Assembly: GCA_047495785.1 (NCBI GenBank)
Contig: JBLDXI010000024.1
Coordinates: 4,030,001-4,094,000, forward strand
DNA: 64,000 nt
From: Lepidodermella squamata
Taxonomy: Eukaryota > Animalia > Gastrotricha
Reading direction: 5' to 3'
The position numbers were made by a program, and so were the translations under genes. Of the stretch, positions 4,799 through 56,452 are shown piece after piece. The stretch's first letter is position 1. Each line of letters starts with the position of its first letter. The notes beneath the pieces were generated by a model. That model was not told the origin of the DNA and searched no databases. It was given only the letters and a program-made list of their open reading frames with translations.

Positions 4799-5517
4799 GA
4801 ACTTGATCTACCCAAGCTGCTTTCCAACGAACGTTGTATTCGCCTCTGAGCAATTGCACAATTTGAATGGGAAGTACAATAATACAAAACAATTTGAAGC
4901 AGCGTGGATGAGTGTGTTCGTTGTACGTGTGTGTTGATCAGCATTCTGAAATAATCATGGCATTCGCTTATGATCTAGTGGTTCTTTGTTTTTTGAAGAA
5001 GGAGTTGTTATGGGGAGAGAAAAAGTCGTTACAAAGCAGCGCCAGAGTTTGGTATACGATATATACATACATGAAAAGCGTGTAATAATAAAGCAAAAAT
5101 TATATTCAAAATATATTCGCTTTTTGTTGATCATATTTAGCAACGCCGCGTGATCATTTTTCCTTACGTATCTTCTTCCATCTTGTCCTTATCTTCTTTC
5201 GTGATTGATTCCACCCGTGAAAATTTACAAAGATGAAATGCTATCATTGCTTATATACATATAAGGCCAAGTTATGTTTACTGAAATTATATATACATTA
5301 CTCTCATTGCTGCTGAAGTAATGAAAATTGACAATAATAAAATCTTATAAGGTGTGAAATTAAATTTTACCAAATATTTTAACGTATTTTCTGATTTTTA
5401 CATTAGGTGCTTATTAATTTTATACAAAAAGCCTTGTTTACTTCTAGTCAGATTCAAAAATTAAAAGTGAGTTTTAACGATTCTTTTCGATTTTCCATAT
5501 CTAATATCGAATTTCAG

Positions 5518-23121: not shown

Positions 23122-23866
23122 TATCATTTGCTATTCGCCAACGTTTTGCTGAAATTCGGCATCTCCGCAACATAATTGATAGAAAATGAGTGGGACCCGG
23201 AATAGTTCGTCAACTCATGTAGCAGTTGCGTCGTACTTCCACAGCGGAAGAGCGATGAAGCTACGGCAAAAGAACGGCGCTACTGCGGCAATACTTGGGC
23301 GAAATAACTATGGCGCGCAAGCCAAAAAAACAGCGCGCTTGTCCCAACAGGTGAACTGGTCCCATGTCCCATGGCCACAACTTTTTGATCAGCGGAGTCA
23401 CATATCCAAGTTTGCTCATGTGCTTTCAGCACCTACTGATCGGGAGATGGGTTAGCATAGTTCTGTCATCTATCGTCACAACCATTCCATTAAATTCGGA
23501 TGACAACGTCACTTCGTTTTTAATCCCACCATTTGGAATTTGGATGAATGCTATGAATCGCTAGTCTATTCTCATTTCAAGTTAATTTAAAGCCTTCCAT
23601 TTCTTAGAAGATTCGCTTGCAACAATTTAAATAATTTCAAGCTCTTAGCTCAATTTTTCCTATATTTTTCAACCAACTTTTTCACGGTCAGTTTATTCCC
23701 GTGTTTTTACAGCATCATGAAGAGATAGTGCAGCCAAAAGCCTGCTTACCGCCGTATTTAGCATAAATATACCAAGTAGTAGGTATAGTTCACGTTATTT
23801 TAGCGCTATTCTGCGTTTTTTCAGTCACGAATGTAATAAATGGTTATACGGACGAGTTTTCATAGC

Positions 23867-23939
23867 GGGGTTGTGGCGCAATGGACAACGCGTCTGACTA
23901 CGGATCAGAAGATTCCAGGTTCGACTCCTGGCAGCCTCG
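23867..23939 (+). tRNA. tRNA-Arg (anticodon ACG)
   Basis: 73 nt; acceptor stem GGGGTTG/CAGCCTC, anticodon arm TCTGA-CTACGGA-TCAGA, GGTTCGACTCC B-box, T-run downstream. Confidence 0.96.
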
Positions 23940-24681
23940 AATAACTTTTTGATGCTAATTTTTCCATATTAAGAAGAACTTGCATTTTTCTCATTTTTCT
24001 AACACTCCAAAGAGATTTTGTCGCATAGTTAAGAATTTCTTGTCCTCAAATTGTAAGGCGAATCAAGCAACATCATCTAATCTACATCAGTTCGATTCGA
24101 TTATCTGGGATTTTAGAAGAATTCCCCTGATGTTATTTTTCACATTTTACCATTTTTCTGGACTAACCAAAAAGTTGATAAAAAAGTCAGAAGTATCATT
24201 TGATTTCATCTTTTTTATTATTTTTATCTTTCTCTATTGAACTTGTCAATCAGCAACCGAAAGCAAGGCCCAAAAAATAACAAATAAAGAACTTCATTGT
24301 TCGGCATATTTCATCACCACGCAACACATTCCCGCAAAATAAACATAGTATCAATAAGAGGTTAAAAGAGGTTGAAAGGAAATAAGTTGCCTCGATTAAT
24401 TTGCGGCTAAATAAAAATAAAATCGAATCAGCCCCAGCTTTTACGACCACAATTTATCAAATAAATCAGTTGGGTAGATAGGTATGAACTCCAATTATTT
24501 CAACAACACCAACAACAATACTGCGGTTCACGTCAGATTTAAGGCCGATTTTTTGTATCAGCTCAGAAAAAATCAGCACAAATAATCTATTTTTTCTACA
24601 ATTGCAAACATACTAAAAACTAGACGCAATTTAAGGTTGAATTTTTTTCCATCAATTATATTTATTATAGGTAAGAAGAGC

Positions 24682-31186: not shown

Positions 31187-31281
31187 AGTCAACACAATTT
31201 CTAAACAAGTCTATTAAATATCAAATGGATGAATAGCTTGGTAGAAAACTCTCTCATAACTCATCAAGATCATTTAATATG

Positions 31282-32740
31282 TACTAACAGAAATTTTTGC
31301 GAGGACTTTATTTCTGCGAATGGCCAATTTTTCAGGTAGTTTTAATTTCTGCGGACAAAATTTTTGCGAATGGAAAAAATGAGCTTTTTTCGGAGAATTC
31401 TGATCGCTTCCGGAGGGTTAAGGCTGAGGGTTAAAAGTTGAGGTTAGGGTTATGTTGGGGGTGGGTTGCCCTCTGAGAGTGAGCCCTCTTGGCACTTCTA
31501 CACACGAAATTGGAAGAGGATCGGCAACTGACGTCATAACGTTTAGCTGTTCTTAGCGTAACGCTATTGACTATTGGTCCGGGTCAACTTTCAAAACCCA
31601 AACCAGCAAAAAGAACAGGTCTAACCCTAAGATGACTCGTGAATATTTTTGGCTTTGAGAGATAGAAAGGTAGCTGTCTTAACTGACATATTGTAATTTG
31701 ATGGCGAAGCTATTTTCAAAAAGGATTTCCCCGGTGCTCTCGCCCCTATCAATAGTTTTGAACTCAACGAGCCATGCGCGAGAAGCGTCTGCCGAAGGAT
31801 GAACTCTTATACCAGGAAGGCTGCAAATCAACATTGAGCAAAATCCCTGAGCTTGAATCCGTCGTTTTTTTTCATTTACCGCGAGGTTCACTTGTAGAGA
31901 TGTAAACTACGCCCGCTGAGCCTCGAGAAAGTTTTCACTAGAAATTTCGTTTTTCCAACGACAGTTTGAGCACAAATTCTTGTACGAACCCGGGCTTCGA
32001 ACCCGTGCATCACTAAAACCCCACTAAAACCTATACTAGTTGCAGTGGCGGAGATAAGAGGTTGTTCGGGGGATGCAAGCGACCGTAAATTACCGTAAGC
32101 CGTAACCCCAAAAATGGACCTTTTTAGCCCCTCTTTAGGCTTTAGGCAAAGAAAGCGCCAAAAGGCTTTCCGAAAAGCCCACAAGTAGGTAAAGCCGAGT
32201 ACTGCTATGTGTCTGCTATATTCGGTTGGCTCACATGACAATAATGATGACAAGGCGTTTTTGTGGCGATGAAAAACTACGAAAAATCGAAAAAAAACAA
32301 ACACGAGCTGGAGACTTTATTTAAAGTTCCCTGGGGTTTTGAAAAATGAAGTTGTGACCCCCTTACTCAGACTATTTTCCCACCTCGTGCTAGCTTAGCT
32401 TATCCGACTTATTTCCGCCACTGGCTAGTTACCTGTTACCTAGGAACCGGGCCACTTTGCTCATTAAATCTGTGAAATTTTATCCTCTAGGCCATGCTAA
32501 TTGCTCTACATACCATGGAAAATGGCTAAGGGGCCCAACCCGGCTAGGTAGCCTGTATTCCCTTGCTTCATATGAAGGGGCATGCAAACTTTCACGAGCC
32601 TGAGCGATTATTGCTTCGTTTTAAGCGAATTCTGAAGAATTAGTGGGACTTAAATTCTGCGAATTTAATTTTTGCGAGTCAAAATTTTCTCGCAGATTCG
32701 CAAAAATTAAGTCCTCGCAGAAATTTCTGTTTTTACAGTA
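31282..32740. mobile_element. Non-autonomous TIR element (about 1.46 kb), degenerate and possibly composite
   Basis: Left aacagaaatttttgcgaggactttatttctgcgaa matches the reverse complement of right ttcgcaaaaattaagtcctcgcagaaatttctgtt; no long ORF. Confidence 0.65.
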
Positions 32741-33277
32741 TATTAAATACCCATCAACGCCTTCACTTTTGGCACAGTGGGTAGAGTATGCAGAGCCAAA
32801 CATAAATTAAGTGATAAGGGGACAAGATGCAACTCAGCTCATAAAGAATATAGTAAAAAATCTCATGTTAGAAATCGTTGAATGACGCAATCGGGTTAGA
32901 GAAAATAATATTGAATATTGCACGCAAAAAATGCGAACTACATGGGCAATTATCAAGATCCAAGCAAGGATCAACGTCTGGACTATCGGTGATAAAAGGC
33001 ATACACGAGAGCAGATTGAGACATCACGCTCTGACTCTAATTCAATCCTCAATTACACTTGGATAACTGCAGAATCGATCGGCTATCGGCTTGACTTGGC
33101 TTCTGGCCTGGACTCTCTCGACACGCAGCTGTTGGAAAAGGGCTCAGCGAAAAGGCTAAGAACGAAAAACGGCTTCAGCAACCTGCGATTACTCGCTTGA
33201 AACTTTTATCCATTAATTTTCGGTCATTTAAAAACATTCGTTCTACAAAATTTTGTTTTTAATAAATGTCATAAAAT

Positions 33278-35486
33278 AAAAACTTCGCTTTTTGATTGAT
33301 CATCGTAAACGCGATGATGACGAGCCGGCAAACACGGCAGTTCTGACTGACGTTGTGCTACACTGGAAGCTTAAAGTCCCAAGTTTTTCTTCGTTCCCTA
33401 GTTCCCCTTTACCTATTTGCATACTTAGCAGGGACATTCTTTTAGCTCCGAATACCTGGAGCTTTTGACTGCGGCGTCCGCCGATTGCTGATTGCTTCTA
33501 GCATCGATCTTAGGCGTCGTTTTCATGTATTTGTTTCTTTTTACTACGTTTAGCTATTACAAAATGAGCGGTTTCAAGCGCGACAAGAAGGAGGAAGAAG
33601 AAGTCGCCAGCAATCCTCTTTACGCTATCGACAAGAGCACAGTGTTGCAAGATGCCAGATACTTTAATGAAAACAACGTTAGCCCTCGGCGCTGCATCCA
33701 AATTTTGACGAAGCTTCTTTATTTGATCAACCAGGTATGCATAGACCCAGAACTTTTCACAGTAGATATATACCGTATTTTACGAATTATAAGACCCTGC
33801 CCTGTATTTTTTTCAAACGAGGTTCAAGTCCTGCCCTGTATTTAGGGTCTGCCCTTTAATTCGGCTCTGCCCTATAATTTTTCGAACCTAATCAGTCACC
33901 TGAAAAGTACCTATATCAACAGTTAAAACCGCCGAATAACCCCTATAGCTACTGCCTTCCACCTGTGACTACACGCGTGAAGTGTGTACTCATGTAGATT
34001 AAGGTGGATAAAGGACGATTAGTGCACTTACTGACGAAAAATCGCAACCTATCCAACTTTAACCACTTACGCAGCAGGCGCTCATGTAAGCCACTTCATA
34101 CAAGGCCCTGCCTATTAATAAGGTTCTGCCCTTTATTATTTCAAATGACCATTACCCTCTGCCCTTTATTCCGGTTCTGCCCTATAATTGGGTCCTGCCT
34201 AATAATTCGTAAAATACGGTATATTATTGTTCAACATTAGGGTGAGTCCTTTGGAGTTCGCGAAGCCACTGATGCCTTTTTCGCGATGACGAAGCTATTT
34301 CAGCTGAGAGATCAAACTGTGCGCCAACTGATGTACATTACTATTAAGGAAATGACAACTATGGCCGAGAATGTAATCATCGTCACTAGCAGCCTGCAAA
34401 AAGACATGACTGGCAAGGACGACGTTTTCCGTGGACCTGCTATCCGCGCTCTTTGCAAGATCACCGATCTTGGCATGATGCAAGCCCTTGAGCGCTACAT
34501 GAAACAAGGCATTGTTGACAAAGTGCCGCCAGCTGCTTCAGCTGCTATCGTAGCATCTATCCATCTGAGCCGATCAGGTTCTGCCGGAGCTGATTTAGTT
34601 CGACGTTGGATCAATGAAGTACAAGAAGCTGTCAATTCCGACAACGTTATGGTTCAATACCACGCCTTGGGTCTGCTTTACGAAATCCGCCGTTTGGACC
34701 GTCTTGCTGTTGTGAAAATGTTGGGCAAATACGTCAAGCAGCCTCTTCGCTCACCATATGCGTCGACCTTCTTGATTCGTCTGGCTACCAAGACGATCAA
34801 TGAGGACGAACAAGGATCAGATTCGACGTTGTACGACTTCATCGAAAGCTGCCTGCGTCACAAATCTGACATGGTCGTTCTGGAGGCAGCTCGCGCTATT
34901 GTCAGTCTGCGCCAGTCTGGGCTGGGTCGTGATCTGAACCAGGCAATTTCATCCCTCCAGCTATTTTGCAGCTCTCCGAAACCTGTTCTACGTTTCGCAG
35001 CAGTTCGAACTCTCAGCCTTGTCGCTATGGACCAACCTCAGGCCGTTGCTGCTTGCAATTTGGATCTCGAGGGTCTGATCACCGATCAAAACCGTTCAAT
35101 CGCAACCCTGGCTATTACCACCCTGCTGAAAACTGGCACTGAGTCTTCAATTGATCGTCTGATGAAGCAAATTCAGTCGTTTATGTCTGAAATTTCGGAC
35201 GAGTTCAAAGTCGTCGTTGTCGACGCGATCAAATCGCTGTGCTCGAAATACCCGAGAAAGCATTCCGTTCTCATGTTTTTCCTGTCCCAGGCTCTTCGTG
35301 ACGACGGAGGTTTTGAGTTCAAGAAAGCGATTGTCGCCGCTATTATCGGAATTATCGAGGAAATCCCCGAGGCGAAGGAAGTTGGCTTGTCTCATTTGTG
35401 TGAATTCATCGAAGATTGCGAGCATACCCTACTTGCTATTCAAATTTTGAACCTGCTCGGACGAGAGGGCCCGCGAACTCTGACCC
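33278..35486 (+). repeat. 2,209-bp direct repeat, copy 1 (left target duplication of the LINE)
   Basis: Same sequence at 39919-42127 (offset 6641); all ORF-track translations in the two copies are identical. Confidence 0.95.
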
Positions 35487-35491
35487 TCTGA
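33564..35491 (+). pseudogene. COPG: Truncated COPG copy (about 473 aa N-terminal trunk; stop codon supplied by the LINE 5' end)
   Basis: Exons 33564-33734 and 34241-35491; matches the downstream COPG up to GREGPRTLT, then L-stop. Confidence 0.88.
33773..34219. mobile_element. Tc1/mariner-type (Tc2/pogo-like ends) MITE in COPG intron 1, copy 1
   Basis: TIR CCGTATTTTACGAATTAT / ATAATTCGTAAAATACGG, TA on both sides, subterminal ctgccct repeats. Confidence 0.85.
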
Positions 35492-35598
35492 AAATATCTG
35501 CGATTGAATATTAAATTTTCTGAGATAGGGGACGGCTTTGCCCGTTGTCGCTTAATTAAATAATTACTGAAAACTGGTCCATCTCTCCAGCGATTCCG

Positions 35599-36555
35599 AT
35601 GTTCCGATTCGAGGCGGAAGATGGAGAACTGAACGAACTGATGAAGCCGTTCGAGTACTTCAGCAATAACCGCAAACTGGGATATTCGACTTGTGCAGCG
35701 TTGGACAAGCGTGTCTCGAAGATCGAAGAGGTCTTGGAGGCAGTGCCCTACATCATGTTCAAGTACGTCGACCGAATGATGAAAACGTTCGAAACGAAAC
35801 TGGAGCAACGAATAGCAACTGGCACCACGAGCGAAGGTCTGAAGTCGCTTAAAGCAGAACTCCACAACGCTGCGGTCACAGCAGCTAGTGAAACGCATGA
35901 GTTCCTAAACACGCAAATGGTGTCGATCAACACTGAGTTAAACAAATGCAAGCAAGAGACAGAAAAGTGCAAGAAGGAAATCGACGATCTAAAACCGAAA
36001 GTCGATCAACCCAAAAAGTCATACGCCGAGGCAGTCGGTCAACTGAAGAAACAGGTGGCTAAAGTGGAGGCGAAAATTGAAGCGGATATTTATGCAGGAG
36101 CCGTCGTACTGAACGGAGTGAAGGAGGGCGAGGGAGACTCACTCGTAAGCGCGGTGAAAGCGGTGCTACCTCGGCTGCAGGGTGTCTTCTTCCGTGCTCG
36201 CCGACTTGGTTTGAAAAAAGAGAACAGCAACCGGCCAATCCTGGTGGTTCCGATCAACGGGGGTGTCACTGCTGAAAACTTTGACGGCATGGTAAAAGAG
36301 CTGCCAGAAGGTGTCAGAATGCGCCGTTTTCTACCTGCAAACCTAATGGAAGCAGAGAGTGCCCTATCGGCCGAGGGAAGAAAGTTGAACCCAGAGAAAA
36401 AAGAGGGCGTTTACTTCCAAATTCGTGGGCTACGAATGCGTGTCGTCAACAAAGATGGCATCGCACGACTGCGATACGACGTGGGATCCAAAAAGGCTGT
36501 ACTCAGCGAAGAGGAGGAAGCTGTATTCGACGGCTTCTTCCGACTACGAAAATGA
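35599..36555 (+). CDS. LINE ORF1 (coiled coil + RRM-like + C-terminal domain)
   Basis: Heptad-rich N-half; VVLNGVKE...RARRLG...NRPILV motif typical of L1/CR1/L2-type ORF1p. Confidence 0.85.
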   Translation: MFRFEAEDGELNELMKPFEYFSNNRKLGYSTCAALDKRVSKIEEVLEAVPYIMFKYVDRMMKTFETKLEQRIATGTTSEGLKSLKAELHNAAVTAASETHEFLNTQMVSINTELNKCKQETEKCKKEIDDLKPKVDQPKKSYAEAVGQLKKQVAKVEAKIEADIYAGAVVLNGVKEGEGDSLVSAVKAVLPRLQGVFFRARRLGLKKENSNRPILVVPINGGVTAENFDGMVKELPEGVRMRRFLPANLMEAESALSAEGRKLNPEKKEGVYFQIRGLRMRVVNKDGIARLRYDVGSKKAVLSEEEEAVFDGFFRLRK

Positions 36556-39500
36556 CGTTACGAAAGAGCGATTGCGTGGTGGCGGGTGTTCTCCTGGAAC
36601 CTCCAAGGGTATCAGGAGATAAAGTTGGATGAGATGAGGAAACTCTTGAAGATGTGTGATTTTATCGGCTTTATCGAAACATGGCAGTTAGCTGGAAAAA
36701 TGCCCGAATTCTCGAAATTCAAAAAATTTGATACCTCAGGAAAGAAGATCGGAAAGGGCAGATTGTCAGGAGGACTAGCGGTCTACGTCAAAGAAGAAAT
36801 TGCTATCAACTGCCAAGTTGTTTGGTCAACATCATACAGTCTGTTTCTGTCTGTAAAGCAGGGCGCTGAGAAAATACTAATGGGCTGGATATATCGACAC
36901 GAGATGGAGAACTTCGACGAGTTTGATGAACAAATTCGAGCTTTGAGTCGAGACCATCAAACAGTGCTCTTGATGGGGGATTTCAACTCCAGACTGGGCC
37001 AGGACACAGAACTACCAGATGAACTGGACGAACTACTGCCTCGTAGATTAAGTGAGGATCAAGTCAAGGATCACCCATCGTTCGATGAATTCGCCGACTT
37101 TATCAACAGCAACGATCTCGTGGTAATCAACGGGCGAGTCACTCCAGAAGATAGCCGACATGCTACGCGACCCGGAAGTAAGTCTGTTCTAGACTATGCT
37201 TTGATAAACTTTGATAACTTCGAAAATATCGAGAAAATGAAAATTGAAGAACAGTCCAAAGTCTCTGATCACAGAGCAATATCAGTGACGATGAAAAAGA
37301 ACAGTGTGGCGACAGAAAGAAATCACATCGATCGTCATATGTTCGAATCGGAACTACGCGATTTCGCCTTGCAACTGGGTGGCAATGAGACGGCAACGAC
37401 CATATCTCGCGGACTAGACGAAGTGGCGGAGAGATCGAAGAAAAACTGGAAATGGAGAAAACCGAAATCAAGCTGTGGACCAGGACCGGTGGGTGTGCGT
37501 CCAAGCAAGCTAGCTACTCTATCGGATACGGAGCGGTTCGAATTTCTTTTGGCGAAGCCTAATAAAGTCTGGGAACTCAAGAAAAAAGATCCAAAGCAGA
37601 AAATGCCAACGGCAGATGAATTCCGTGCTCATCTAGCGAAGTCCCTGGGAAACCAAACAATAGGCAACCGCGCAATAGAGACGAAGACAAGACACGTAAA
37701 CTCGATCAACACGATTCGAGCAGTCAAAAGAACAACGAATTACGACGAAGTCCCAACCAAAGTGATTAAACTGGACCAACTAAGAGCCTGGACAAATCCG
37801 TTCGTCAGGTTAGGAACTCATACTGGGTACCCGTTCTCTCCTCCTCAGGAAACTTGTTCGCGAGATTCGATACTGGACCCGATCACCCAAGACGAGGTGA
37901 AACAAACGGTCATGGGCTGCTCAAGAGCTTCGGCGGCGGGCATTGATGGAGTCAGCTATGAAACGATACGGAAAAATATCGACACATTGGCGCCAGTCCT
38001 GAGTGACCTCTACACGAAAATCCTGAAAGGCCAGCCGTACCCCAAGTCCTGGAAAAAGGCAATGATAACGCCAATTTTCAAAATTGGTGACCCGGGCGAT
38101 GTGAAGAACTATCGACCAATTTCGCTGCAGCCGTGCTACGCTAAACTGTTTTCGAAGATATTAGATCAAAGGTTACGTAATTGGCTAAGATTGTTCGCCC
38201 CTCTGAAAAACTGCCAGTTTGGATTTCAAGAGAATCTATCGACAATGGATGCTACCACAGTGTTGTACACGGTCCTCGCTAGTTGGCTAGAGAGACACCC
38301 CCGTGTCTATGCCATCTTCATCGACTTTACCTCTGCATTCGACAAAATCGACAGGGAACTGCTATTCCGGAAATTGGAAAGACGTGGAATCCCGTCGCGA
38401 CTTGTTACGCTCCTTAGGGACATGTACTGCGAAACAAAGGCTGTTGTTTCAGTTGGCGAAAAACTGTCTGCCGAATTCGTAACATCAGAAGGCGTGAAAC
38501 AAGGCGACCCGCTGTCACCCCTCCTGTTTTGTATATATATTGATGACCTAGAAGACTCGCTGAAAATCCCTGGAGTACCGGGTTTGCCTCTGGCAGAAAA
38601 GAGTGTTAGGTGTATCTTATTTGCGGACGACGTTGTGCTGATCTCGGCTTGGCGACACGAGATGGAGGGATATCTACTTCGACTCAAAAACTATGAGCGA
38701 GAAAACTCGATTGCGGTGAACAAGAATAAGACAAAATATATGATATTCGGTGAGGAAGAAGAAGGAAATGTCCCTCTCACATTCGACGGTGAAAATCTTG
38801 AAAAAGTTGAACATTTCAAATACCTGGGCATTTGGCTTTCAAGAGATTTGTCATTCAAAGAAGCCCTGAAACAAGCGCGACTGAGAATCGCGCGAACTGC
38901 CGGGATGTTGCCGAAAATTTTCGATAAATTTGACAAGCTCCCCATCGAGAGCATTCGTACCTTGTATCGCGGTGTTGTACTGGCAACGGGCCTCTACGGC
39001 GCGGAGCTCTGGGGCCTTGACCGCCAACGGGCCCTCGAGCCGATACCGTGGCGCTTAATAAAGAGGGCTCTCGACTTACCGACCTGCTCAAGCCACCGAC
39101 TCCTAGCTAGAGAGATCTGGATGCCCGACCCTAACAACGAAAGGCGCATGGCAGCAATTCGGTACTATTGGCGTATGAAAGAGGCAAAAATCGGTACGCT
39201 CCTGTACTCGGCATACGAAACGCAAAAATACATGAAACCGACGATGAAGAACAAAGTTGACCGTGTGGAAAAAGAAATGGTTAAAATCCACCTCCCGGGC
39301 ATACTGAAAGCAAACGTGGACAGCAAAACTGCAAAGGCCGTCGTCCGACAAAGATATGAGGCCCTGAGCCGCGAAACGAACGCGAAAAACCTAGGTAGCC
39401 GACCATGGTCGATCAACCCAAGAACAAGTGGCATTTCGTACGCCGAGAAGTATTTTGCGAAATTGGGGCGTGAAATGGGTCGAATCCTACTTTTGATTAG

Positions 39501-39741
39501 ATGTGACGCGCTATTCGGCAATTCGGTTTACGTTAGTAATCAATGCAAGCTCTGTTCGTCACCTACGCCGGCTTCCTCTTGGCGACTTCTAGACCACCTC
39601 ACTTCAAATTGTACCGCCATCGACGCATCGCTCAGACTGAGCCAAGCTCAGATAGACAAGCTACTATTCGCCGGTGCAGAAAATCGAAGCAGCGAAACGC
39701 TGAAAAAAATTGATGAGATTGTAAAAATTTATTATCATTAA
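36556..39741 (+). CDS. LINE ORF2 (APE endonuclease + reverse transcriptase + Cys/His C-terminus); open from the codon after the ORF1 stop
   Basis: SWNLQG, FIETW, MGDFNSR, LDY, SDH; NYRPISL, QFGF, FIDFTSAFD, GVKQGDPLSPLLF, LFADD, FKYLG, YGAELWG, C..C...H....C. Confidence 0.95.
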   Translation, partial: RYERAIAWWRVFSWNLQGYQEIKLDEMRKLLKMCDFIGFIETWQLAGKMPEFSKFKKFDTSGKKIGKGRLSGGLAVYVKEEIAINCQVVWSTSYSLFLSVKQGAEKILMGWIYRHEMENFDEFDEQIRALSRDHQTVLLMGDFNSRLGQDTELPDELDELLPRRLSEDQVKDHPSFDEFADFINSNDLVVINGRVTPEDSRHATRPGSKSVLDYALINFDNFENIEKMKIEEQSKVSDHRAISVTMKKNSVATERNHIDRHMFESELRDFALQLGGNETATTISRGLDEVAERSKKNWKWRKPKSSCGPGPVGVRPSKLATLSDTERFEFLLAKPNKVWELKKKDPKQKMPTADEFRAHLAKSLGNQTIGNRAIETKTRHVNSINTIRAVKRTTNYDEVPTKVIKLDQLRAWTNPFVRLGTHTGYPFSPPQETCSRDSILDPITQDEVKQTVMGCSRASAAGIDGVSYETIRKNIDTLAPVLSDLYTKILKGQPYPKSWKKAMITPIFKIGDPGDVKNYRPISLQPCYAKLFSKILDQRLRNWLRLFAPLKNCQFGFQENLSTMDATTVLYTVLASWLERHPRVYAIFIDFTSAFDKIDRELLFRKLERRGIPSRLVTLLRDMYCETKAVVSVGEKLSAEFVTSEGVKQGDPLSPLLFCIYIDDLEDSLKIPGVPGLPLAEKSVRCILFADDVVLISAWRHEMEGYLLRLKNYERENSIAVNKNKTKYMIFGEEEEGNVPLTFDGENLEKVEHFKYLGIWLSRDLSFKEALKQARLRIARTAGMLPKIFDKFDKLPIESIRTLYRGVVLATGLYGAELWGLDRQRALEPIPWRLIKRALDLPTCSSHRLLAREIWMPDPNNERRMAAIRYYWRMKEAKIGTLLYSAYETQKYMKPTMKNKVDRVEKEMVKIHLPGILKANVDSKTAKAVVRQRYEALSRETNAKNLGSRPWSINPRTSGISYAEKYFAKLGREMGRILLLIRCDALFGNSVYVSNQCKLCSSPTPASSWRLLDHLTSNCTAIDASLRLSQAQIDKLLFAGAENRSSETLKKIDEIVKIYYH

Positions 39742-39878
39742 AAGGTTTACTTGTCGGTGTATGAATTAAAAAATGAATACAAAACGTCGCTTTAAGATTT
39801 ATTAATTTCTGTTTCCTGTTTTTTTTTCCCTTCTATGTGCTTTTAAAAATATTACTGACTGGCTGACGAAAACTAATA

Positions 39879-39880
<2 letters not shown>

Positions 39881-39920
<40 letters not shown>
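39881..39920 (+). repeat. (TCAA)10 LINE 3' tail
   Basis: Ten perfect TCAA units directly after AATAAA. Confidence 0.95.
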
Positions 39921-39922
<2 letters not shown>

Positions 39923-42127
39923 ACTTCGCTTTTTGATTGATCATCGTAAACGCGATGATGACGAGCCGGCAAACACGGCAGTTCTGACTGACGTTGTGCT
40001 ACACTGGAAGCTTAAAGTCCCAAGTTTTTCTTCGTTCCCTAGTTCCCCTTTACCTATTTGCATACTTAGCAGGGACATTCTTTTAGCTCCGAATACCTGG
40101 AGCTTTTGACTGCGGCGTCCGCCGATTGCTGATTGCTTCTAGCATCGATCTTAGGCGTCGTTTTCATGTATTTGTTTCTTTTTACTACGTTTAGCTATTA
40201 CAAAATGAGCGGTTTCAAGCGCGACAAGAAGGAGGAAGAAGAAGTCGCCAGCAATCCTCTTTACGCTATCGACAAGAGCACAGTGTTGCAAGATGCCAGA
40301 TACTTTAATGAAAACAACGTTAGCCCTCGGCGCTGCATCCAAATTTTGACGAAGCTTCTTTATTTGATCAACCAGGTATGCATAGACCCAGAACTTTTCA
40401 CAGTAGATATATACCGTATTTTACGAATTATAAGACCCTGCCCTGTATTTTTTTCAAACGAGGTTCAAGTCCTGCCCTGTATTTAGGGTCTGCCCTTTAA
40501 TTCGGCTCTGCCCTATAATTTTTCGAACCTAATCAGTCACCTGAAAAGTACCTATATCAACAGTTAAAACCGCCGAATAACCCCTATAGCTACTGCCTTC
40601 CACCTGTGACTACACGCGTGAAGTGTGTACTCATGTAGATTAAGGTGGATAAAGGACGATTAGTGCACTTACTGACGAAAAATCGCAACCTATCCAACTT
40701 TAACCACTTACGCAGCAGGCGCTCATGTAAGCCACTTCATACAAGGCCCTGCCTATTAATAAGGTTCTGCCCTTTATTATTTCAAATGACCATTACCCTC
40801 TGCCCTTTATTCCGGTTCTGCCCTATAATTGGGTCCTGCCTAATAATTCGTAAAATACGGTATATTATTGTTCAACATTAGGGTGAGTCCTTTGGAGTTC
40901 GCGAAGCCACTGATGCCTTTTTCGCGATGACGAAGCTATTTCAGCTGAGAGATCAAACTGTGCGCCAACTGATGTACATTACTATTAAGGAAATGACAAC
41001 TATGGCCGAGAATGTAATCATCGTCACTAGCAGCCTGCAAAAAGACATGACTGGCAAGGACGACGTTTTCCGTGGACCTGCTATCCGCGCTCTTTGCAAG
41101 ATCACCGATCTTGGCATGATGCAAGCCCTTGAGCGCTACATGAAACAAGGCATTGTTGACAAAGTGCCGCCAGCTGCTTCAGCTGCTATCGTAGCATCTA
41201 TCCATCTGAGCCGATCAGGTTCTGCCGGAGCTGATTTAGTTCGACGTTGGATCAATGAAGTACAAGAAGCTGTCAATTCCGACAACGTTATGGTTCAATA
41301 CCACGCCTTGGGTCTGCTTTACGAAATCCGCCGTTTGGACCGTCTTGCTGTTGTGAAAATGTTGGGCAAATACGTCAAGCAGCCTCTTCGCTCACCATAT
41401 GCGTCGACCTTCTTGATTCGTCTGGCTACCAAGACGATCAATGAGGACGAACAAGGATCAGATTCGACGTTGTACGACTTCATCGAAAGCTGCCTGCGTC
41501 ACAAATCTGACATGGTCGTTCTGGAGGCAGCTCGCGCTATTGTCAGTCTGCGCCAGTCTGGGCTGGGTCGTGATCTGAACCAGGCAATTTCATCCCTCCA
41601 GCTATTTTGCAGCTCTCCGAAACCTGTTCTACGTTTCGCAGCAGTTCGAACTCTCAGCCTTGTCGCTATGGACCAACCTCAGGCCGTTGCTGCTTGCAAT
41701 TTGGATCTCGAGGGTCTGATCACCGATCAAAACCGTTCAATCGCAACCCTGGCTATTACCACCCTGCTGAAAACTGGCACTGAGTCTTCAATTGATCGTC
41801 TGATGAAGCAAATTCAGTCGTTTATGTCTGAAATTTCGGACGAGTTCAAAGTCGTCGTTGTCGACGCGATCAAATCGCTGTGCTCGAAATACCCGAGAAA
41901 GCATTCCGTTCTCATGTTTTTCCTGTCCCAGGCTCTTCGTGACGACGGAGGTTTTGAGTTCAAGAAAGCGATTGTCGCCGCTATTATCGGAATTATCGAG
42001 GAAATCCCCGAGGCGAAGGAAGTTGGCTTGTCTCATTTGTGTGAATTCATCGAAGATTGCGAGCATACCCTACTTGCTATTCAAATTTTGAACCTGCTCG
42101 GACGAGAGGGCCCGCGAACTCTGACCC
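39919..42127 (+). repeat. 2,209-bp direct repeat, copy 2 (right target duplication of the LINE)
   Basis: Matches 33278-35486; starts at the end of the TCAA tail. Confidence 0.95.
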
Positions 42128-43510
42128 CTGCCAAGTTTATTCGATACATCTATAATCGAGTTTTGTTGGAACAGCCGGTTGTACGAGCTGCTGCCGTCGC
42201 TGCTTTAGCCAAATTCGGCGCTGCTTGTGACGCTCTGAGGGCTAGCATCATCGTCCTATTAGAGCGGTGCTTGCTTGATGTTGATGACGAAGTTCGAGAC
42301 CGCTCGACTCTATACGTTCATCTGTTGAAACGCGGCGATAAGGCCTTGATGTCTCAGTACATTTTGAACTCACTGCCTGTCGCAGTTGCTCCGTTAGAAC
42401 GAGCCCTTCACCAATACACGCTGGCACCAAGCGAGGCTCCGTTCGACATTCGAAGCGTCCCAGTTGTCGAGGCTGCCCCGATCAAGACCGGCCGCCCAAC
42501 CGCCGGCCCTGCTTCATCTGGTCCGACTAGCGGCCAACCGACCGGCGCCCAGGAGAAGACCCCGTTGACCCGGGCTGAAATCTACAAGGAACAACTCGCC
42601 CGTATTCCGCAATTTGCGAGCCTGGGGCCGTTGTTCAAGTCAACCCAGCCGTTCGATTTGACCGATGCCGGCACCGAATACCAAGTCTCAGTTGTCAAAC
42701 ACATCTTCGACCGCCACATCGTTTTCCAGTTCGACTGCACGAATACGCTGAACGACCAACTGCTCGAAGTTGTTCACGTGCAAATGGACACGAACGACGC
42801 GTTTGAAGTCGTGTGCTCGATCCCGCTGCCGCAGCTGCACTACAACCAGCCGGGTATCACCTACACGTGCGTTCAGTTGTCCGACGACCCGCTCGCGATA
42901 ACCGGCTCCTTTGCTTGTGTGCTCAAATTCAACGTCAAAGATTGTGATCCAGCCACCGGCAAGCCGGAGACCGATGTCGAGTACGCGGATGAGTACGCCC
43001 TCGAGAATTTGGACGTGACTGTTGCTGACTTCGTCGTGCGCATCGCCAAGCCGAATTTCACCGCCGCCTGGGCTGAGTTGGACGGCGTTCCAGAGGTTGA
43101 TGACACCTACGCTCTGACCACCGTCTCAAGCCTTGATGGTTCGTTATTAGCCCTATATTTAGCGTTCAAGTTGCCCGAAAATATGATTTTCGAACTCATC
43201 AATCTTCCTTAAAAATCTCAATTTTTCTGAATTTGAGCCCTAATTTTTTAATTTTTTTTTTCGATTTTTCCTTGTAGAAGCCGTGAAGAGTCTCATTGAA
43301 ATCATGGGCCTGCAGCCGTGCGATCGATCGGAGAAGGTGCCCGAGGGCAAGGCAATCCACACGCTGTTCATGTCCGGCATCTACCGCGGCTACGCCGACG
43401 TGCTAGTCCAGGCGAAACTCGGCCAGGTCCAGGCCGGAGTCACACTTCAGTTGACCGTGCGCAGTTCGGACGAAAACGCCGCCAAGGTCATTGCATCGGC
43501 AGTCGGCTAA
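40205..43510 (+). CDS. COPG: Coatomer subunit gamma, intact (about 886 aa; exons 40205-40375, 40882-43138, 43278-43510)
   Basis: [11 protein letters not shown]...[50 protein letters not shown], appendage-domain motifs (TEY.V..VKHIF..HIVFQF.CTNTLND). Confidence 0.96.
40414..40860. mobile_element. Tc1/mariner-type MITE in COPG intron 1, copy 2
   Basis: Duplicated together with the 2,209-bp repeat. Confidence 0.85.
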
Positions 43511-46010: not shown

Positions 46011-47216
46011 ATGATGCTCGTCATCATGCTTATCATTGAGATGCTTGCGAGCCCTATTCTTGCTGGAGGAAACGATTCATCGGCAGGGGAAGATGTAATG
46101 CCCTTGTTGTTCAAAGACTGCAAACTGTCACCCAGCGCCGTAGTTCCTAATATGGCCAGTTCTCGAAAGCCGGTTGCAGTGGAAACCACTCTTTCCTTAG
46201 ACACAATAGTCGGAATAAGCGAGTTGGAAGAAACTATAGAACTAACGGGCGGCCTTCTCGTTACTTTCTACCTCGACTGTTTGGCAAAATCAGCTGTTAA
46301 ATACAACGAGACATACGAGGTTCCAGTTTATGGCGTCATTACTAACACCAACGACTATTGGCGACCACCGATCACGTTCATGAACAGCCGCAATGATCAC
46401 GGCCTTACTCAGAATGTCTACCCTGCTATCCTGATGTATCCATTTCTTGGCACTGCCGCCTACGTTTTTACTGGATTTTTCACGCCAAGATGCCCGATGA
46501 ATTTTGAAACGTAAGCTAATATGCCTTTGCAGGTTGCAGAAGCTGCCTATTTAGCCGTTTCCATTAACCTCAGATTCCCATTTGATACTCAAACCTGTGA
46601 ACTCAGCTTTGGATTGTATCTACCAAGCAGCGCGATAAGTATCAAGAAGCATAGCAACATTTTCAACAGCGGCCCAGGTAAATTCGTCTCGCCAAATATA
46701 GGCTGGAGGCTTCTGAATTCCTCGAGCGACTTCAGCCTGCGTCAGGCTTCTGGTATCGGCTATTTCGAACTGTCAACTTCAATAACAATCAAACGCCGGC
46801 CTGATTATTTTATCGCGAACATCGTCATGCCGTGTTTCTTCCTAACTGCAGCCCAATTCGTGACGTTTTTCATGCCGACCGAGGCCCCGGAACGTGCGAG
46901 CTATGCTGTAACGATTCTGTTGAGTTTCACTGTCATACAAGCCCAGGTGCAATTGAACATACCGAAAACCCCTGTGAACATTCTGATCAACGACGTGATT
47001 CAGGCGGAATCGATCTCAGCCCTAATTGTTACCCTCTATGCTGGTGTCACATGTGCGTGGTACAAATCGTCGCACAAAAGAGCGAATCGAGTAATTGAGA
47101 TCTTTTGCGCGAAAATCTTGCTATGCCGCCTGGTTGATTTAATTTCTGCGTCGATCCTCGCCGCCATTTTGATCACAATCAATGCCGGAGTTGGATATTT
47201 CATTTACACAGCTTGA
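46011..47216 (+). CDS. Cys-loop ligand-gated ion channel subunit (nAChR-like, non-alpha), paralogue 1; intron 46511-46573
   Basis: Signal peptide, WRPP, Cys-loop CPMNFETFPFDTQTC, pre-M1 IKRRP, M2 PERASYAVTILLSFTV, four TM segments. Confidence 0.88.
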
Positions 47217-47423: not shown

Positions 47424-48010
47424 TGTGGCGGTGATGCCACCTGCGCCGTGACACGCGCCCTTGCGGCACGCGTCCGCTTCTCCCGCCACGGCGCCCACGG
47501 GCCCACCTAAGCACGCTCCTATCATTCATCAATCTGTCATTTCATATTTCATTCATATTTCATTACGCTTTACCGGTGCCTCCGCAGGGTCCTCTCACCC
47601 TATCGTCCGCCTCTGCTAACTCAGCCGTCAGCCGATTCCACCGTTAATCCGAATTACTACTGTTACCTAGAACATATTTTATCTATTTTTACTCATCACA
47701 TCGGTACGTTGTATCGCGATCCGCGATATCCACTCCGCCTGCCTACTCCGCGTGATCGGTAATTTATTGTTACGGCCTGAATAACCTCAGTTTCATATCG
47801 CCTTCATTTCAACAGCTTTGCTTACGTGCCGTTTGTCTGCTTCTCCTCCCGGCTGACTGCTTCGCTTTATCTCGAACCCGGTATGCCACCTCGCCCTACC
47901 TTTATACACTTTTTCCTTACACTGTGCTTGTATACAGGGCCTTGATTTTACCTGAATAAAAGACCTGATTGCCAACAACCAGTTGTGCTCCTATTGGTCT
48001 CACTGTTACA
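47424..48010 (+). repeat. 5' LTR
   Basis: TGTGGCGG...CTGTTACA; matches 55866-56452 wherever compared. Confidence 0.96.
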
Positions 48011-48011
48011 C

Positions 48012-48029
48012 TGGTGCATCGGCCGGGAA
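48012..48029 (+). promoter_or_regulatory. Primer-binding site complementary to the tRNA-Gly(GCC) 3' end
   Basis: TGGTGCATCGGCCGGGAA is the reverse complement of ...TTCCCGGCCGATGCA-CCA. Confidence 0.88.
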
Positions 48030-48036
48030 ATCCGTC

Positions 48037-49716
48037 ATGCCCGCAAAGACCCGCTATGGGAAAGCGCCTCCCTCGCCTGTCGTGTCGCCTCCTCCTTACT
48101 CTGCAGCGACAAGAGGCAGTGGACGTGGCCGTGGCCGCGGAGGTCGTGGTGGCGCCCGTAACAGCCGGAAACAGCCTGACTTCTCGTCGCCGACGTCGCC
48201 GGCCGACACTGCTGTGCCCTGGGGATCGCCGTCACCCGTTCGCACCGGCAAGCGGCAGCCCTCGCCCGCCCCGCGGAATCGGACGCCGCAGAGGCCGCCG
48301 CCGCCTTCCAGCGCACCTGTCTCCGACTTCGAGAGGCTACTGGCGTTCGCCGATGTTGCCACGCTGGAACGGTTCCTCGAGGACGAATTCGCCGTCATCG
48401 CCGGCATGCCGTCAGGTCCCAATCGCGCCGTCCGGGAAGCGCGTCATCACCGCATTCTCGATCTGCACGAACGGCGCGTGGATGAGGAACGCGACCGCGC
48501 TCTGCAAGACCGCCTGGTTGCCATCGCCCCGGCTGCAACCGCCTACCGCCTCGATCCGACGGCCCCAAGCCGCCCGACGGTCCCACCACCACCGCCGCCG
48601 TCAGTCACGTTTTCGTCGGCGCCTGTGAACATCGAACCGGCCGCAATTCAGCCTCGTCCGGGTCCAACTACGGCACCGCCTCCTGCTGCTACCTCGAACC
48701 TCAAATTGGCTCGATTGCAGCCCACGTCCGCCAGCCTCACCTCGACGGTCCTCTCGGCTCCAACCAAGTTGAAGGACCTAGTGGAAAAACAGGGCGCCAA
48801 GGAGCCGCTCCTTACCTTCGCCGCCCGCTGCAAGGCCACTCTCGCCACGGTCGAGCTGCCCGACATTTCGGCCCTCACGAACCTGCTGCATGGCTTGTTC
48901 AACGACACGTGCAAGGCCGCGCTCAGCAGCATGCTGGCAGCAGGCATCAGAATCGATTCGCTGGACCGGCTTTTCGACGAGTTGGCCCTCCGCGTGCCTA
49001 GCACGGCGGTCGACGAAGAGCCCAAGCAGCAAGCTGGCGAAGCCGTTGTAGTTTTCGGTGACCAGTGCCGACGTCACGTGCGGCACCACTACCCTGGTCT
49101 ACCTGACGCCGCCTCGGACAAGCTGGCAGCGCGCCTTTTCCTGGCTGGCCTACGCCCTGGCGAGCTCAAGCGCCATGTTACCCTGCGCGACGAGGAAGCC
49201 CGAGCCTTGCGCGGCGAATCGGCCCCGTTGGCTGTGCTCCTCGCTCACGCTTCGACCTTCGAACGGGCGGAGCTCCGTGTCGCCCCAGAGGACAAGGCCG
49301 CCAAGCAGAAGCCCGCGGCAATCACCATCGCCAGCGTTGCGACCTCCGAGCCCGCGCCGAAGCCTCCGCCTCCTCGGCAAGACCGACCGCCGCAACAGGC
49401 CCGCCGACAACAGTTTCAGCGGCCTCCGCCTCAACGGCCACAGCAACAGCAGCAACCGCCGCAACAACCGCCTTTCCAGCAGCGGCAGCAACAGCCGTTC
49501 AACCCGCCGCCCTCTCGGCCGAACGATTCGCGCCGACCATTTCGCCGCGATCCATGGCCGGAGGCTATTGACCAGTTGGCGTTCTACCACCAGCTGGGTG
49601 TCTGTTGGAGGTGCGGCGCGGCCGATCACTCCTTCCGCGACCTGGGCTGCCCGCAGATGTCGGCGCAGCTCCGAGCCGCCGCCCAGGCGCCCGTTCAGAG
49701 CAATCAGTCAAACTGA
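48037..49716 (+). CDS. gag: Gypsy gag
   Basis: ATG just after the PBS; FLAGLRP capsid-like motif; knuckle CWRCGAADHSFRDLGC. Confidence 0.85.
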   Translation: MPAKTRYGKAPPSPVVSPPPYSAATRGSGRGRGRGGRGGARNSRKQPDFSSPTSPADTAVPWGSPSPVRTGKRQPSPAPRNRTPQRPPPPSSAPVSDFERLLAFADVATLERFLEDEFAVIAGMPSGPNRAVREARHHRILDLHERRVDEERDRALQDRLVAIAPAATAYRLDPTAPSRPTVPPPPPPSVTFSSAPVNIEPAAIQPRPGPTTAPPPAATSNLKLARLQPTSASLTSTVLSAPTKLKDLVEKQGAKEPLLTFAARCKATLATVELPDISALTNLLHGLFNDTCKAALSSMLAAGIRIDSLDRLFDELALRVPSTAVDEEPKQQAGEAVVVFGDQCRRHVRHHYPGLPDAASDKLAARLFLAGLRPGELKRHVTLRDEEARALRGESAPLAVLLAHASTFERAELRVAPEDKAAKQKPAAITIASVATSEPAPKPPPPRQDRPPQQARRQQFQRPPPQRPQQQQQPPQQPPFQQRQQQPFNPPPSRPNDSRRPFRRDPWPEAIDQLAFYHQLGVCWRCGAADHSFRDLGCPQMSAQLRAAAQAPVQSNQSN

Positions 49717-52700
49717 CAGGGCAGACGGGCCAGGTGGCCGCCCGTTCTTGCCCTCCCGACGCCGCCTTAGCCACCCTGTCCGCCGCCGTTGATGCCCTGT
49801 GCGACTTCCCCCTTGCTGGAACCCCCGTTACCGGTCTTGTTGACACAGGTGCTAATGCCACTATTGTTTCCGCCGCGCTCTGCCGTTTCCTGGCGCTGCC
49901 CATCATCCCGTTGCCCACGCCTGTCACTATGAGAACCGCCGATGGTCAGATCGTCGACTCGCGCACGGTCCTCGGCACCGCCCAGCTGCCCTTCTCGTCA
50001 GCGTTCGGACCTCACCAGGCCATTGTGTTGGCCAGCCCTAGTCACGACCTCATCGTCGGCTTGGATTGGTTGCGTCGACACCAAGCTGTGGTCGATCTGC
50101 GACAACTCCGCCTCCGTGGCCTCGACTGGCACTTGCCGATCCACCTCTCGCCGCCGGCCGGGCCTCGCTGGGCCTCGGTTTCCGTCGATGGCCGGCCATT
50201 CTACGACGCCCAGGTCTTGGTCAACGGTCGCATGACTACGGCTCGCGTCAGCACCAGCTCGCCTACCTCGATCGCTACGCCGGCTTGCATGTCGATGTTG
50301 GGTGCAAATTGGGCTCCCTTCGCCCCCGGCTCGCTTCCGCGCCTGCCTTCGTCGGCTGGTCGTGTGGTCCCGCTTGGCCTCGGCTTCCTTCGCTTGCACA
50401 CCTCGACCCATGCGACCGATCTGCCCGTCTTGGTCGTGAGTGGCGACGAGCACCGCCTAGTCCTCGGTGGCTCTCTGCTGTTCGCAAATCGTGCCGAGTT
50501 CAACCTCGCCGCTGGCTCGTTCTCGTTCGCCCCGCCGTCCGCGCCCGATGCGCTCCCCGCCGACGTCGAGGACCTTATCTCGCGCTCTGTGTCTGGCCTC
50601 GGTGACGATGATGCCGCCGACATGCGTGCCTTACTGGTCGAGTTCGCGCCAGTGTTCAGCGACCGCTCGATGGGTATCCAGCTGAAACAGCCGCTCCTCA
50701 TCGAGACCACGGCTACGCGTCCGATCAGTGTGCCTCGCCGCTACATGGGGCCTCACAAGAAGGCCGAGCTTCGCAAGCACTTGCGCTTCCTCCGCGAACG
50801 CGGCCTGATCGAGGTCGGCAACTCACCGAACGCTTGCTGCCCCGTCATCGTGCCTAAGCCCTCGGCGGCCGAACCGAACGGCACCCGCTTCACGGTCGAC
50901 TTCCGACCCCGGAACAAGTTCCTACCCGACCGGTATCACGTCCCGCCGCTCTGGGAGGATGTGACGGAGCGACTTCACGGTGCTAAGTTCTTCTGCCGCC
51001 TTGATCTTCGCCAGGCGTTTCACCAGCTGCCGTTGGCGGAGGAGTGCCGCGACCTGACGACGTTCTACGGCGCCGATGGCGAGAAGTGGCGCTACGCCGT
51101 GCTACCCATGGGCCTGTCGGTCAGTCCTGCCCTGTTGCAGTCCGCGATGCAGAACGAGATCCTGGCTGGTCTTCTGGACCTCTGCATCGTGTACCAGGAT
51201 GACTGCCTGGTCTACGCCGACAGCGTCCCAGAGCTACTTCGCCGCCTCCGCCTGGTCTTCGAGCGCTTCCGAGACTTTCGCGTCAGCGTTTCCGCCGCCA
51301 AGTGCGAGCTCGCTCGCCCAGAATTAAAGTTCCTTGGCCGTCGCCTTTCCGCCTCTGGCGTGTCTCCGGACCCCGATCGCACCCGCGACATCGCGCTCTT
51401 TCCTCGCCCTACCTGCCGCCGGGATGTTCGCTCGTTCCTGGGCACCTGCAATTTTCTACGCGCACATCTGCCTGACTTCGCGACGCTAGCCGCGCCCTTG
51501 TCCGCACTCACCTCGAACGCCGTGCCGTTTGCCTGGTCGGACGACTGCGAAAAGTCGTTCCTCGCCTTGAAGGCCGCCTTCCAGCAGCCGGGCATCCTGG
51601 TCTACCCGGACTTCTCCCGAGCGTTCAAGGTGATGTGTGACGCCTCGGACGTCGGCCTCGGTTGCCTGCTTATGCAAACTGGTGATGACGGTCTCGACCG
51701 GCTGGTTGCTGCGCACAGTCGCCTGCTTTCGCCCGCCGAGCGGAAGTACCCAGCCCTCGAGAAGGAGTGTCTTGCGATCGTGTTCTCGTGTGAACGTTTC
51801 CGCGAATACCTGCTTGGCACCAGGTTCGTCCTCGAAACCGATCACAAGGCGCTCCTGTGGCTTCAAACCCTCCGTGATCCCAGCAAGCGTGTCTGGCGTT
51901 GGTTGGAGATGCTCGGTGACTACCAGTTCGACCTGGTCCACCGTCCGGGTCGCCTCAATCTCGCTGACGGTCTTTCACGGCCATCCGTTGAGCCGGACGA
52001 TGTTGGCTATACTTCCGACGACAGCACCCTGCCCGACGCGACCTGCGCCGCCTCGCTGTCGGTGGCCGACTCGTTCCGCCTCGACCCCGCTGCACTCCGC
52101 GCCGCTCAGTTGGCCGACCCCGATCTCGGCCCCGTACTACGGCATCTGGACCTCGGCGAGCCTCTGCCTCGGCCACTCTCGGCCGGTTCGGCCCGGCTGT
52201 TACAGCTGCAGGACACGGTCTCGAAGGACGACGCCGGCGTCTTCTACATGTCGGTATCGGACCGCTTGTTCCCGCGGCTGTGCCTCATCCTGCCCGCCGT
52301 CTACGTGCCAGAAGTCATCAGAACAGCCCACGACGCGCCGATGTCTGGTCACCTGGGTCGCCGCAAGACCCTCGAGCGCATCCGCGATTACTGTTGGTTC
52401 CCAGGGTGTTACAGCGCCGTCCGGAAGTTCTGCCGCGATTGTGCCACGTGCGCCGCCCGAAAAGCCACGAATCAGTCCACGACAGTGCCGCTAGTACCGC
52501 TTCGCCACGCCGACGAGCCGTTCGCTTTGGTCGCTATGGATGTGGTTGGGCCTATTCAGCCGGCCAGCAGCCAGGGTCATCGATGGGTGCTGACGTTCTA
52601 CGACGCTTTCTCCAAGTTGTTGGTCGCCTACCCGCTGAGGTCAACGAAAGCGCCCTCAATCGTCGCGTGCCTTGAGCGGTTCATCGCGGATTTCGACCTA

Positions 52701-55311: not shown

Positions 55312-55853
55312 GGTCTGCACGAAAACTCTCGACATCGATCGGTCCTTCGATCCGCTCCGCCTTGGCGCCGTCTGGCGTCGTTCGCCCGACGGGCGACGGG
55401 TAACGTCTTCATTCTCGTTTGTTGTCCTGCCGTACTACTGTCGTTGTACCGTCCTGACTATCCGGAAACTTAACAGCGCTGTATAAATATTGTAATTTTT
55501 GTACCTGTCCTTTAATTTCTATATGTCGCTTACCTGTAAATCCGCTGAACCACTGTTTTATTGTAAAATTCCCGCGTGGCAAACCGATGACGCCTGTAAA
55601 ATAATGATAGTACTTTAATTCAATCCGATTTAATTTTCCAACAGTTTTTACACTTTCAAACGTTGTTCTTGTTTTTTTTTTCCGCCTTGTTGTGATACTC
55701 TACGATTTCAAAACTTTTACCGAATGCCTCTGTGTCATAATGTAAATCTTTTGTATCAAACGTCATATTGTATATTTATGCATACCGGGTTCCGTCTCAA
55801 TCTATTGATTATGTATTATAACAATTTTTTTTTGTACGCTTCCGCTTCATTTC

Positions 55854-55865
55854 AGTGGGGGAGAG
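55854..55865 (+). promoter_or_regulatory. Polypurine tract
   Basis: AGTGGGGGAGAG immediately before the 3' LTR. Confidence 0.8.
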
Positions 55866-56452
55866 TGTGGCGGTGATGCCACCTGCGCCGTGACACGCGC
55901 CCTTGCGGCACGCGTCCGCTTCTCCCGCCACGGCGCCCACGGGCCCACCTAAGCACGCTCCTATCATTCATCAATCTGTCATTTCATATTTCATTCATAT
56001 TTCATTACGCTTTACCGGTGCCTCCGCAGGGTCCTCTCACCCTATCGTCCGCCTCTGCTAACTCAGCCGTCAGCCGATTCCACCGTTAATCCGAATTACT
56101 ACTGTTACCTAGAACATATTTTATCTATTTTTACTCATCACATCGGTACGTTGTATCGCGATCCGCGATATCCACTCCGCCTGCCTACTCCGCGTGATCG
56201 GTAATTTATTGTTACGGCCTGAATAACCTCAGTTTCATATCGCCTTCATTTCAACAGCTTTGCTTACGTGCCGTTTGTCTGCTTCTCCTCCCGGCTGACT
56301 GCTTCGCTTTATCTCGAACCCGGTATGCCACCTCGCCCTACCTTTATACACTTTTTCCTTACACTGTGCTTGTATACAGGGCCTTGATTTTACCTGAATA
56401 AAAGACCTGATTGCCAACAACCAGTTGTGCTCCTATTGGTCTCACTGTTACA
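55866..56452 (+). repeat. 3' LTR
   Basis: 587 bp, matches the 5' LTR. Confidence 0.96.

Follow-up and report, generated by a model that had tools for sequence, protein, structure and literature searches.

A LINE between two identical copies of a 2,209-bp segment carrying the 5' half of the COPG gene in the gastrotrich Lepidodermella squamata

Target-site duplications (TSDs) of exceptional length have been described for several long interspersed nuclear elements (LINEs). For human L1 in HeLa cells, TSDs of more than 100 bp arise in fewer than 10% of events, and in cells deficient in nucleotide excision repair large TSDs form the majority and extend up to the size of copy-number variants, with exon duplication being a possible outcome according to the authors (Servant et al. 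2017, PMC5223499). In L1-expressing clones and in cancers, whole-genome sequencing has revealed tandem duplications of 1-10 kb at L1 insertions that are 'regarded as large TSDs' (Mendez-Dorantes et al., bioRxiv 10.1101/2024.12.14.628481), and in one tumour a single L1 was reported to bridge a tandem duplication of 22.6 Mb, in the PCAWG pan-cancer study of whole genomes (Rodriguez-Martin et al. 2020, PMC7058536). In mutation-accumulation lines of Chlamydomonas reinhardtii over half of the insertions of Dualen-4b have flanking duplications, with a median length of 900 bp; Dualen elements encode two endonucleases, one restriction-like (RLE) and one of the apurinic/apyrimidinic type (APE), which the authors invoke to account for the long TSDs (Lopez-Cortegano et al. 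2023, PMC9977147). R9, an rDNA-specific LINE of bdelloid rotifers, has a 126-bp TSD as cited there (Gladyshev and Arkhipova 2009, cited in PMC9977147). Here we describe a LINE in a 64,000-bp window of the genome of the gastrotrich Lepidodermella squamata (assembly GCA_047495785.1, contig JBLDXI010000024.1, positions 4,030,001 to 4,094,000 of the forward strand) that lies between two copies of a segment carrying the 5' half of COPG, the housekeeping gene for gamma-COP. All coordinates below are those of the window.

The segments follow one another directly in the order left copy (33278-35486), LINE (35487-39918; 4,432 bp) and right copy (39919-42127). An earlier note on this DNA had proposed this geometry, with a (TCAA)10 tail abutting the second copy, and had suggested aligning the two copies as a check. 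Its coordinates prove exact: in a global alignment that includes the flanks, the copies are 2,209 bp each with no mismatches and no gaps, and alignability is lost at once beyond both boundaries. A BLAST self-comparison of the window recovers the same 2,209-bp pair, which is the sole long repeat pair in the LINE/COPG region; apart from it, the window contains a single long exact repeat, an unrelated pair of long terminal repeats (LTRs). Comparison of the junctions identified no short direct repeat flanking the LINE at either end, and the 2,209 bp are therefore its only target duplication. Direct repeats of target DNA abut both LINE termini, as they do in a TSD, at 2,209 bp per side, a length that falls outside the usual range of a few to ~30 bp and belongs to the rare 'large TSD' class. 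Kilobase TSDs are indeed rare, as the earlier note had said, but they are also documented, both for human L1 and for Dualen-4b.

The LINE anatomy, both junctions and the duplicated interval can be read directly. At the 3' junction the LINE tail is joined to the right copy with a 2-nt microhomology, the final AA being common to tail and target, so that the LINE 3' boundary is ambiguous by 2 nt. The bottom strand at the putative nick site reads GTTTTT/ATTTTA, which is the kind of T-rich site nicked by L1-type endonucleases, and the primer-terminal TT can pair with the AA that ends the LINE RNA tail. At the 5' junction the left copy ends in CTGACCC and the LINE starts with TCTGAAAAT, and the right copy at the equivalent point goes on with CTGCCAAG. 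This sense-strand junction (CTGACCC/CTGCC) is unlike the first nick site and thus fits a break that was not made by the LINE's own endonuclease. The left copy had been said to end exactly where the LINE 5' untranslated region (UTR) begins; the boundary is sharp, but placing the LINE 5' end there is circular, because the sole marker of that end is the point where the duplication stops, with no second copy of the element to compare.

The LINE has neither LTRs nor terminal inverted repeats (TIRs), and its 3' end is a short tandem repeat, (TCAA)10. The leader ahead of the first open reading frame (ORF1) is 112 nt, which suggests a full-length or near full-length copy. ORF2 contains Exo_endo_phos (residues 3-229) and Exo_endo_phos_2, both above the Pfam gathering scores, together with RVT_1 (E=4.5e-33, also above threshold), and it terminates shortly past a C-terminal Cys/His motif. 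Neither a second, restriction-like endonuclease nor an RNase H is present in ORF2, for which Pfam gives only the APE and reverse transcriptase (RT) domains. Among solved structures it best matches L1 ORF2p (E=4e-27) and R2 (E=3e-22); as to features of the L1 clade, L1 ORF2p is only marginally ahead of R2, and the tail is (TCAA)n instead of poly(A). ORF1 has no Pfam family above threshold and no solved-structure relative. Judged from its two open ORFs and the domains of ORF2, the LINE is predicted to be an autonomous APE-type element that is complete and coding-competent. ORF1 and ORF2 lie in one frame and are separated (36553-36585) by a single stop codon followed by ten sense codons; the endonuclease domain begins at residue 3 of the listed ORF2, and the first ATG is only at residue 17. 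This arrangement suggests readthrough or reinitiation.

The COPG exons were mapped by tblastn with two proteins, P0049 (the closest relative, 82% identity) and P0052 (a mollusc gamma-COP of 875 aa), as listed in Table 1. The COPG ATG at 33564 lies 286 bp downstream of the left boundary. In-frame splicing of the upstream copy gives a predicted product of 473 codons (473 aa), and this copy appears to be a promoter-bearing stub continuing in sense orientation into the LINE. The remainder of exon 2 and exon 3 are present only downstream of the right copy, where COPG aligns to residues 1-875 of the 875-aa mollusc protein, last residue included. The downstream gene is thus predicted to be complete, with 286 bp of native upstream DNA and the LINE 3' end before that, in agreement with the claim that an intact gene is regenerated behind the LINE. 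Compared with named proteins, the window COPG has ~63% identity evenly across molluscs, annelids and hemichordates, and 59-61% to vertebrates.

Table 1. Features of the LINE insertion and of the duplicated COPG segment, in window coordinates.
Feature	Coordinates	Strand	Evidence
Left copy of the 2,209-bp duplication: 286 bp upstream DNA, COPG exon 1, intron 1 and first 1,246 bp of exon 2	33278..35486	+	100% identical to 39919-42127
Putative first-strand (bottom-strand) nick, between 33277 and 33278	33273..33282	-	junction sequences, both strands
COPG exon 1, upstream truncated copy, residues 1-57	33564..33734	+	tblastn P0049, P0052
Intron 1 (GT...AG), 506 bp: ~48 bp intron plus 457-bp MITE; intact duplicate at 40376-40881	33735..34240	+	
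Miniature inverted-repeat transposable element (MITE) within intron 1, 457 bp, 26-nt terminal inverted repeats, TA flanks	33768..34224		
Exon 2 fragment of truncated COPG; frame enters LINE by 3 nt, stop TGA 35489-35491	34241..35491	+	
LINE (non-LTR retrotransposon), 4,432 bp, same orientation as COPG	35487..39918	+	ORFs, Pfam, tail, solved-structure matches
LINE ORF1, 318 aa, coiled-coil-like central part	35599..36555	+	ORF calling, Pfam
LINE ORF2, 1,051 aa: APE-type endonuclease (3-229), reverse transcriptase (506-750), C-terminal Cys/His motif	36586..39741	+	Pfam
(TCAA)10 tail, exactly ten units, after AATAAA at 39875-39880; final AA overlaps start of right copy	39881..39920	+	
Right copy of the duplication, running on into the remainder of COPG	39919..42127	+	BLAST, global alignment
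Complete COPG gene: exon 1 40205-40375, exon 2 40882 to ~43146, exon 3 43271-43507	40205..43507	+	

Because the duplicate retains the intron with its MITE, as well as 286 bp of upstream DNA, it was copied from DNA and not from spliced mRNA, as the earlier note had also concluded. A retrocopy of spliced mRNA is ruled out by the presence of all three in both copies. The downstream copy keeps its upstream DNA and full coding sequence because one of the two breakpoints lies outside the gene. We therefore do not follow the suggestion of a 'gene-sparing insertion mode', because one complete copy is left by every head-to-tail duplication that has one of its breakpoints beyond the gene, which is no feature of the element itself. 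The alternative outcomes are also removed by selection, the gene being essential, so that sparing of the gene requires no special property of the LINE.

An indication of the ancestral arrangement comes from L001, a metagenome assembly contig from the European Nucleotide Archive (ENA) that encodes P0049 and is collinear with the window from 27.1 to 44.8 kb. Both have NUDIX, RF-1, CCDC47, DPH3, COPG and mitochondrial L17 (mL17) in this order, and L001 contains a single COPG and no LINE, suggesting strongly that the duplicated, LINE-bearing arrangement is derived. The L001 orthologue of COPG has no intron, and no MITE, at the exon 1/2 position (L001 5497-5499). The spacer between DPH3 and COPG is 2.4 kb in the window and ~0.6 kb in L001, where the two genes are divergent. 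Between DPH3 and COPG in the window, at 31272-32748, inverted 50-bp repeats with 85% identity surround a segment of ~1.5 kb that is probably a non-autonomous TIR element.

The locus is probably the product of one recent event of target-primed reverse transcription (TPRT), in which an autonomous APE-type LINE generated a 2,209-bp tandem duplication of its target. We infer the nicking, priming and resolution steps as follows. The endonuclease would nick the bottom strand at 33277/33278, a position 286 bp upstream of the COPG ATG, and the freed 3' end (GTTTTT) would prime on the UCAA tail, followed by copying of the entire LINE RNA. The far end of the cDNA would then be joined to a sense-strand 3' end located 2,209 bp downstream in exon 2, rather than a few bp away, and fill-in synthesis would yield the order X-A-LINE-A-B, A being the duplicated segment. 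The 3' end in exon 2 could derive from an unrelated distal nick, could be a nascent strand or a broken end supplied by a replication fork or the sister chromatid, or could be the reciprocal end after ~2.2 kb of break-induced replication, and the sequence does not tell these three apart. The earlier note had placed the first nick about 290 bp upstream of the ATG, which agrees with the 286 bp found here, and second-strand resolution 2.2 kb downstream in exon 2; the other junction does lie there, but resolution at that point is one among several routes to an identical sequence. The structural reading in the earlier note agrees with every available sequence test and appears to be the most economical explanation, and its interpretation as a whole is partly supported. 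Because the insertion is present in a genome assembly, the event was presumably a germline one.

Several observations weigh against a single TPRT event. The absence of any difference over 2 x 2.2 kb, the two intact ORFs and the perfect tail indicate either a very recent event or an assembly artefact, and perfect identity of the two copies is also what such an artefact would give. Both copies and the LINE are placed on one molecule by the assembly. The L001 contig belongs to a different species (82% protein identity) with intergenic DNA that is not alignable, and so does not provide the exact empty site. Lastly, no same-family copy of the LINE that would give its true 5' terminus, usual TSD length and endonuclease preference was found in any of the collections searched, among which the host genome was not included.

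Exact look-ups with ORF1 and ORF2 gave no match. The relatives of ORF2 are distant, with a best identity of 30% in a word-indexed search, 35-39% in an exhaustive search of 1.84 billion representatives, and 25-32% in a metagenome scan. Within the 64-kb window, sensitive blastn and tblastx searches recovered no LINE fragments elsewhere, and the sole further stretch of TCAA units, 3.5 of them at 7390, is a microsatellite that has no similarity to the LINE. The nearest relative that has flanking sequence is an element on a metagenome contig (L041), which represents the second-closest ORF2 relative (the P0170/P0319 cluster, 35% identity); it ends in a (CAT)8 tail and lies ~400 bp downstream of a 5S rRNA gene (the two features lying at 5-124 and 514-5764 of the contig), and no clear TSD was found for it. 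Its (CAT)8 tail shows microsatellite tails to be in use in the wider group, and a literature search on TCAA tails gave no lead to a LINE clade. That kilobase TSDs should be the rule in this family of APE-only LINEs, as in Dualen-4b, is quite unlikely.

The alternative that survives best, although we consider it unlikely, is an assembly artefact in which two independent same-orientation insertions of this LINE, one at 33278 and the other in exon 2 at 35486, are present on different haplotypes or paralogues and the assembly path switches between them inside the identical 4.4-kb LINE. Such a switch would reproduce both junctions with no large TSD, and is compatible with the 100% identity of the copies. 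However, it requires two insertions in the same orientation within 2.2 kb of an apparently low-copy LINE, of which there is no other copy or fragment within 64 kb, and one of the two would knock out an essential gene. Unless heterozygosity is very low, the haplotypes should also differ somewhere in 2.2 kb of partly non-coding DNA, and no differences are present. No shared repeat that might have led to a mis-join is present at either junction, and the same assembly resolves a Ty3/gypsy element at 47424-56452 that has 587-bp LTRs with 100% identity, TG...CA ends and the canonical 5-bp TSD GTGTC. Its identical LTRs and TSD point to recent transposable element activity in the genome, the insertion itself appearing very recent, and show that the assembly handles ordinary transposable element junctions and nearby identical repeats correctly.

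A very unlikely alternative is RNA-bridged repair, in which the RT switches from the LINE RNA to a nascent, unspliced COPG pre-mRNA and copies past the nick, with the cDNA then annealing upstream by homology. This would also yield a seamless X-A junction and account for the kept intron; moreover, the LINE nick is directly at an active housekeeping gene, and template switching by LINE reverse transcriptases is described in the literature. However, transcription of COPG would have to start upstream of 33278, giving a 5' UTR of more than 286 nt, which is long given that in the relative the divergent genes DPH3 and COPG are only ~600 bp apart, and the RNA would have to still contain the 506-nt intron. 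It is more improbable still that an older 2.2-kb tandem duplication was followed, in a second step, by LINE insertion exactly at the duplication junction: the final segment order would be the same, but the LINE must have struck the junction to the base with no short TSD of its own, of which there is none, and the lack of any divergence between the copies argues against an older duplication. The least probable alternative, 5' transduction, in which transcription from the COPG promoter read through a LINE resident in exon 2 and the transcript was retrotransposed as a unit, agrees with the sense orientation of the LINE downstream of the COPG promoter but would have had to land exactly where its own 5' end matches, restoring the native X-A junction, and to include probable non-transcribed upstream DNA and an unspliced intron, and there is no copy of a junction between LINE and downstream exon 2 within the window.

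The window, in which introns are very few, also encodes PCAF/KAT2 (PCAF_N), a MAM-domain protein, Cys-loop ligand-gated channels and further metazoan genes. The Cys-loop ligand-gated ion-channel genes are in tandem (46011-47216, 57139-58335, 59147-60343 and 62569-63099) with 72-76% DNA identity, and the Ty3/gypsy element sits between the first and the second of them. This element has a gag-like ORF and a pol region encoding protease, reverse transcriptase, RNase H and integrase (PR-RT-RNaseH-INT), and its interior is 55-66% GC in a genome of ~42-45% GC, a mismatch in composition with the host. A tRNA-Arg (ACG) at 23866-23940 is the only Rfam match in the window.

The COPG locus is probably a new instance of a known but rare outcome of LINE integration and not a new mechanism. 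If confirmed, it would provide a base-pair-resolved and apparently germline partial tandem gene duplicate made by a LINE, outside of mammals and green algae, in which a full-length and coding-competent element retains both junctions intact. It would show that the 'large TSD' outcome known for L1 from cell culture and cancer can turn up in a genome assembly, and that a promoter-plus-5'-exon module fused to a LINE can arise beside an intact essential gene, providing a natural case for the seeding of gene duplication, exon shuffling and 5' transduction by LINEs. Were long TSDs to be a property of the family as a whole, a LINE with a 112-nt leader would routinely set a copy of the host promoter and of the 5' gene segment upstream of itself, giving promoter capture with no gene loss and recurrent tandem partial gene duplicates in a compact metazoan genome.

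Of the described systems, the large TSDs of human L1 resemble this locus in that a single APE-type LINE is present at a head-to-tail duplication junction, with its 3' tail at an endonuclease-like T-rich site and the duplicated target flanking the element. The 2.2-kb length lies within the reported 1-10 kb class, and the candidate mechanisms are shared, namely a distal nick, a 3' end on the sister chromatid, or break-induced replication. The human L1 events are somatic or from cell culture and mostly involve 5'-truncated elements with poly(A), whereas the present case is in the assembly of a compact-genome invertebrate and presumably germline; the LINE, apparently full-length and ending in (TCAA)n, is of another, unclassified family, and what it duplicates is a housekeeping gene's promoter and 5' half. 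Dualen-4b of C. reinhardtii (Dualen-4b_cRei) likewise has flanking duplications of hundreds to thousands of bp that are read as long TSDs, its insertions being de novo and germline-equivalent, and it provides the precedent for long TSDs as a property of a whole family; unlike Dualen-4b, the LINE described here contains only APE and RT domains and is available as one copy. R9 is similarly a LINE producing an exceptionally long TSD, but it is site-specific with a TSD of fixed length that, going by the cited figure, is ~17 times shorter, whereas the insertion at COPG is not in rDNA.

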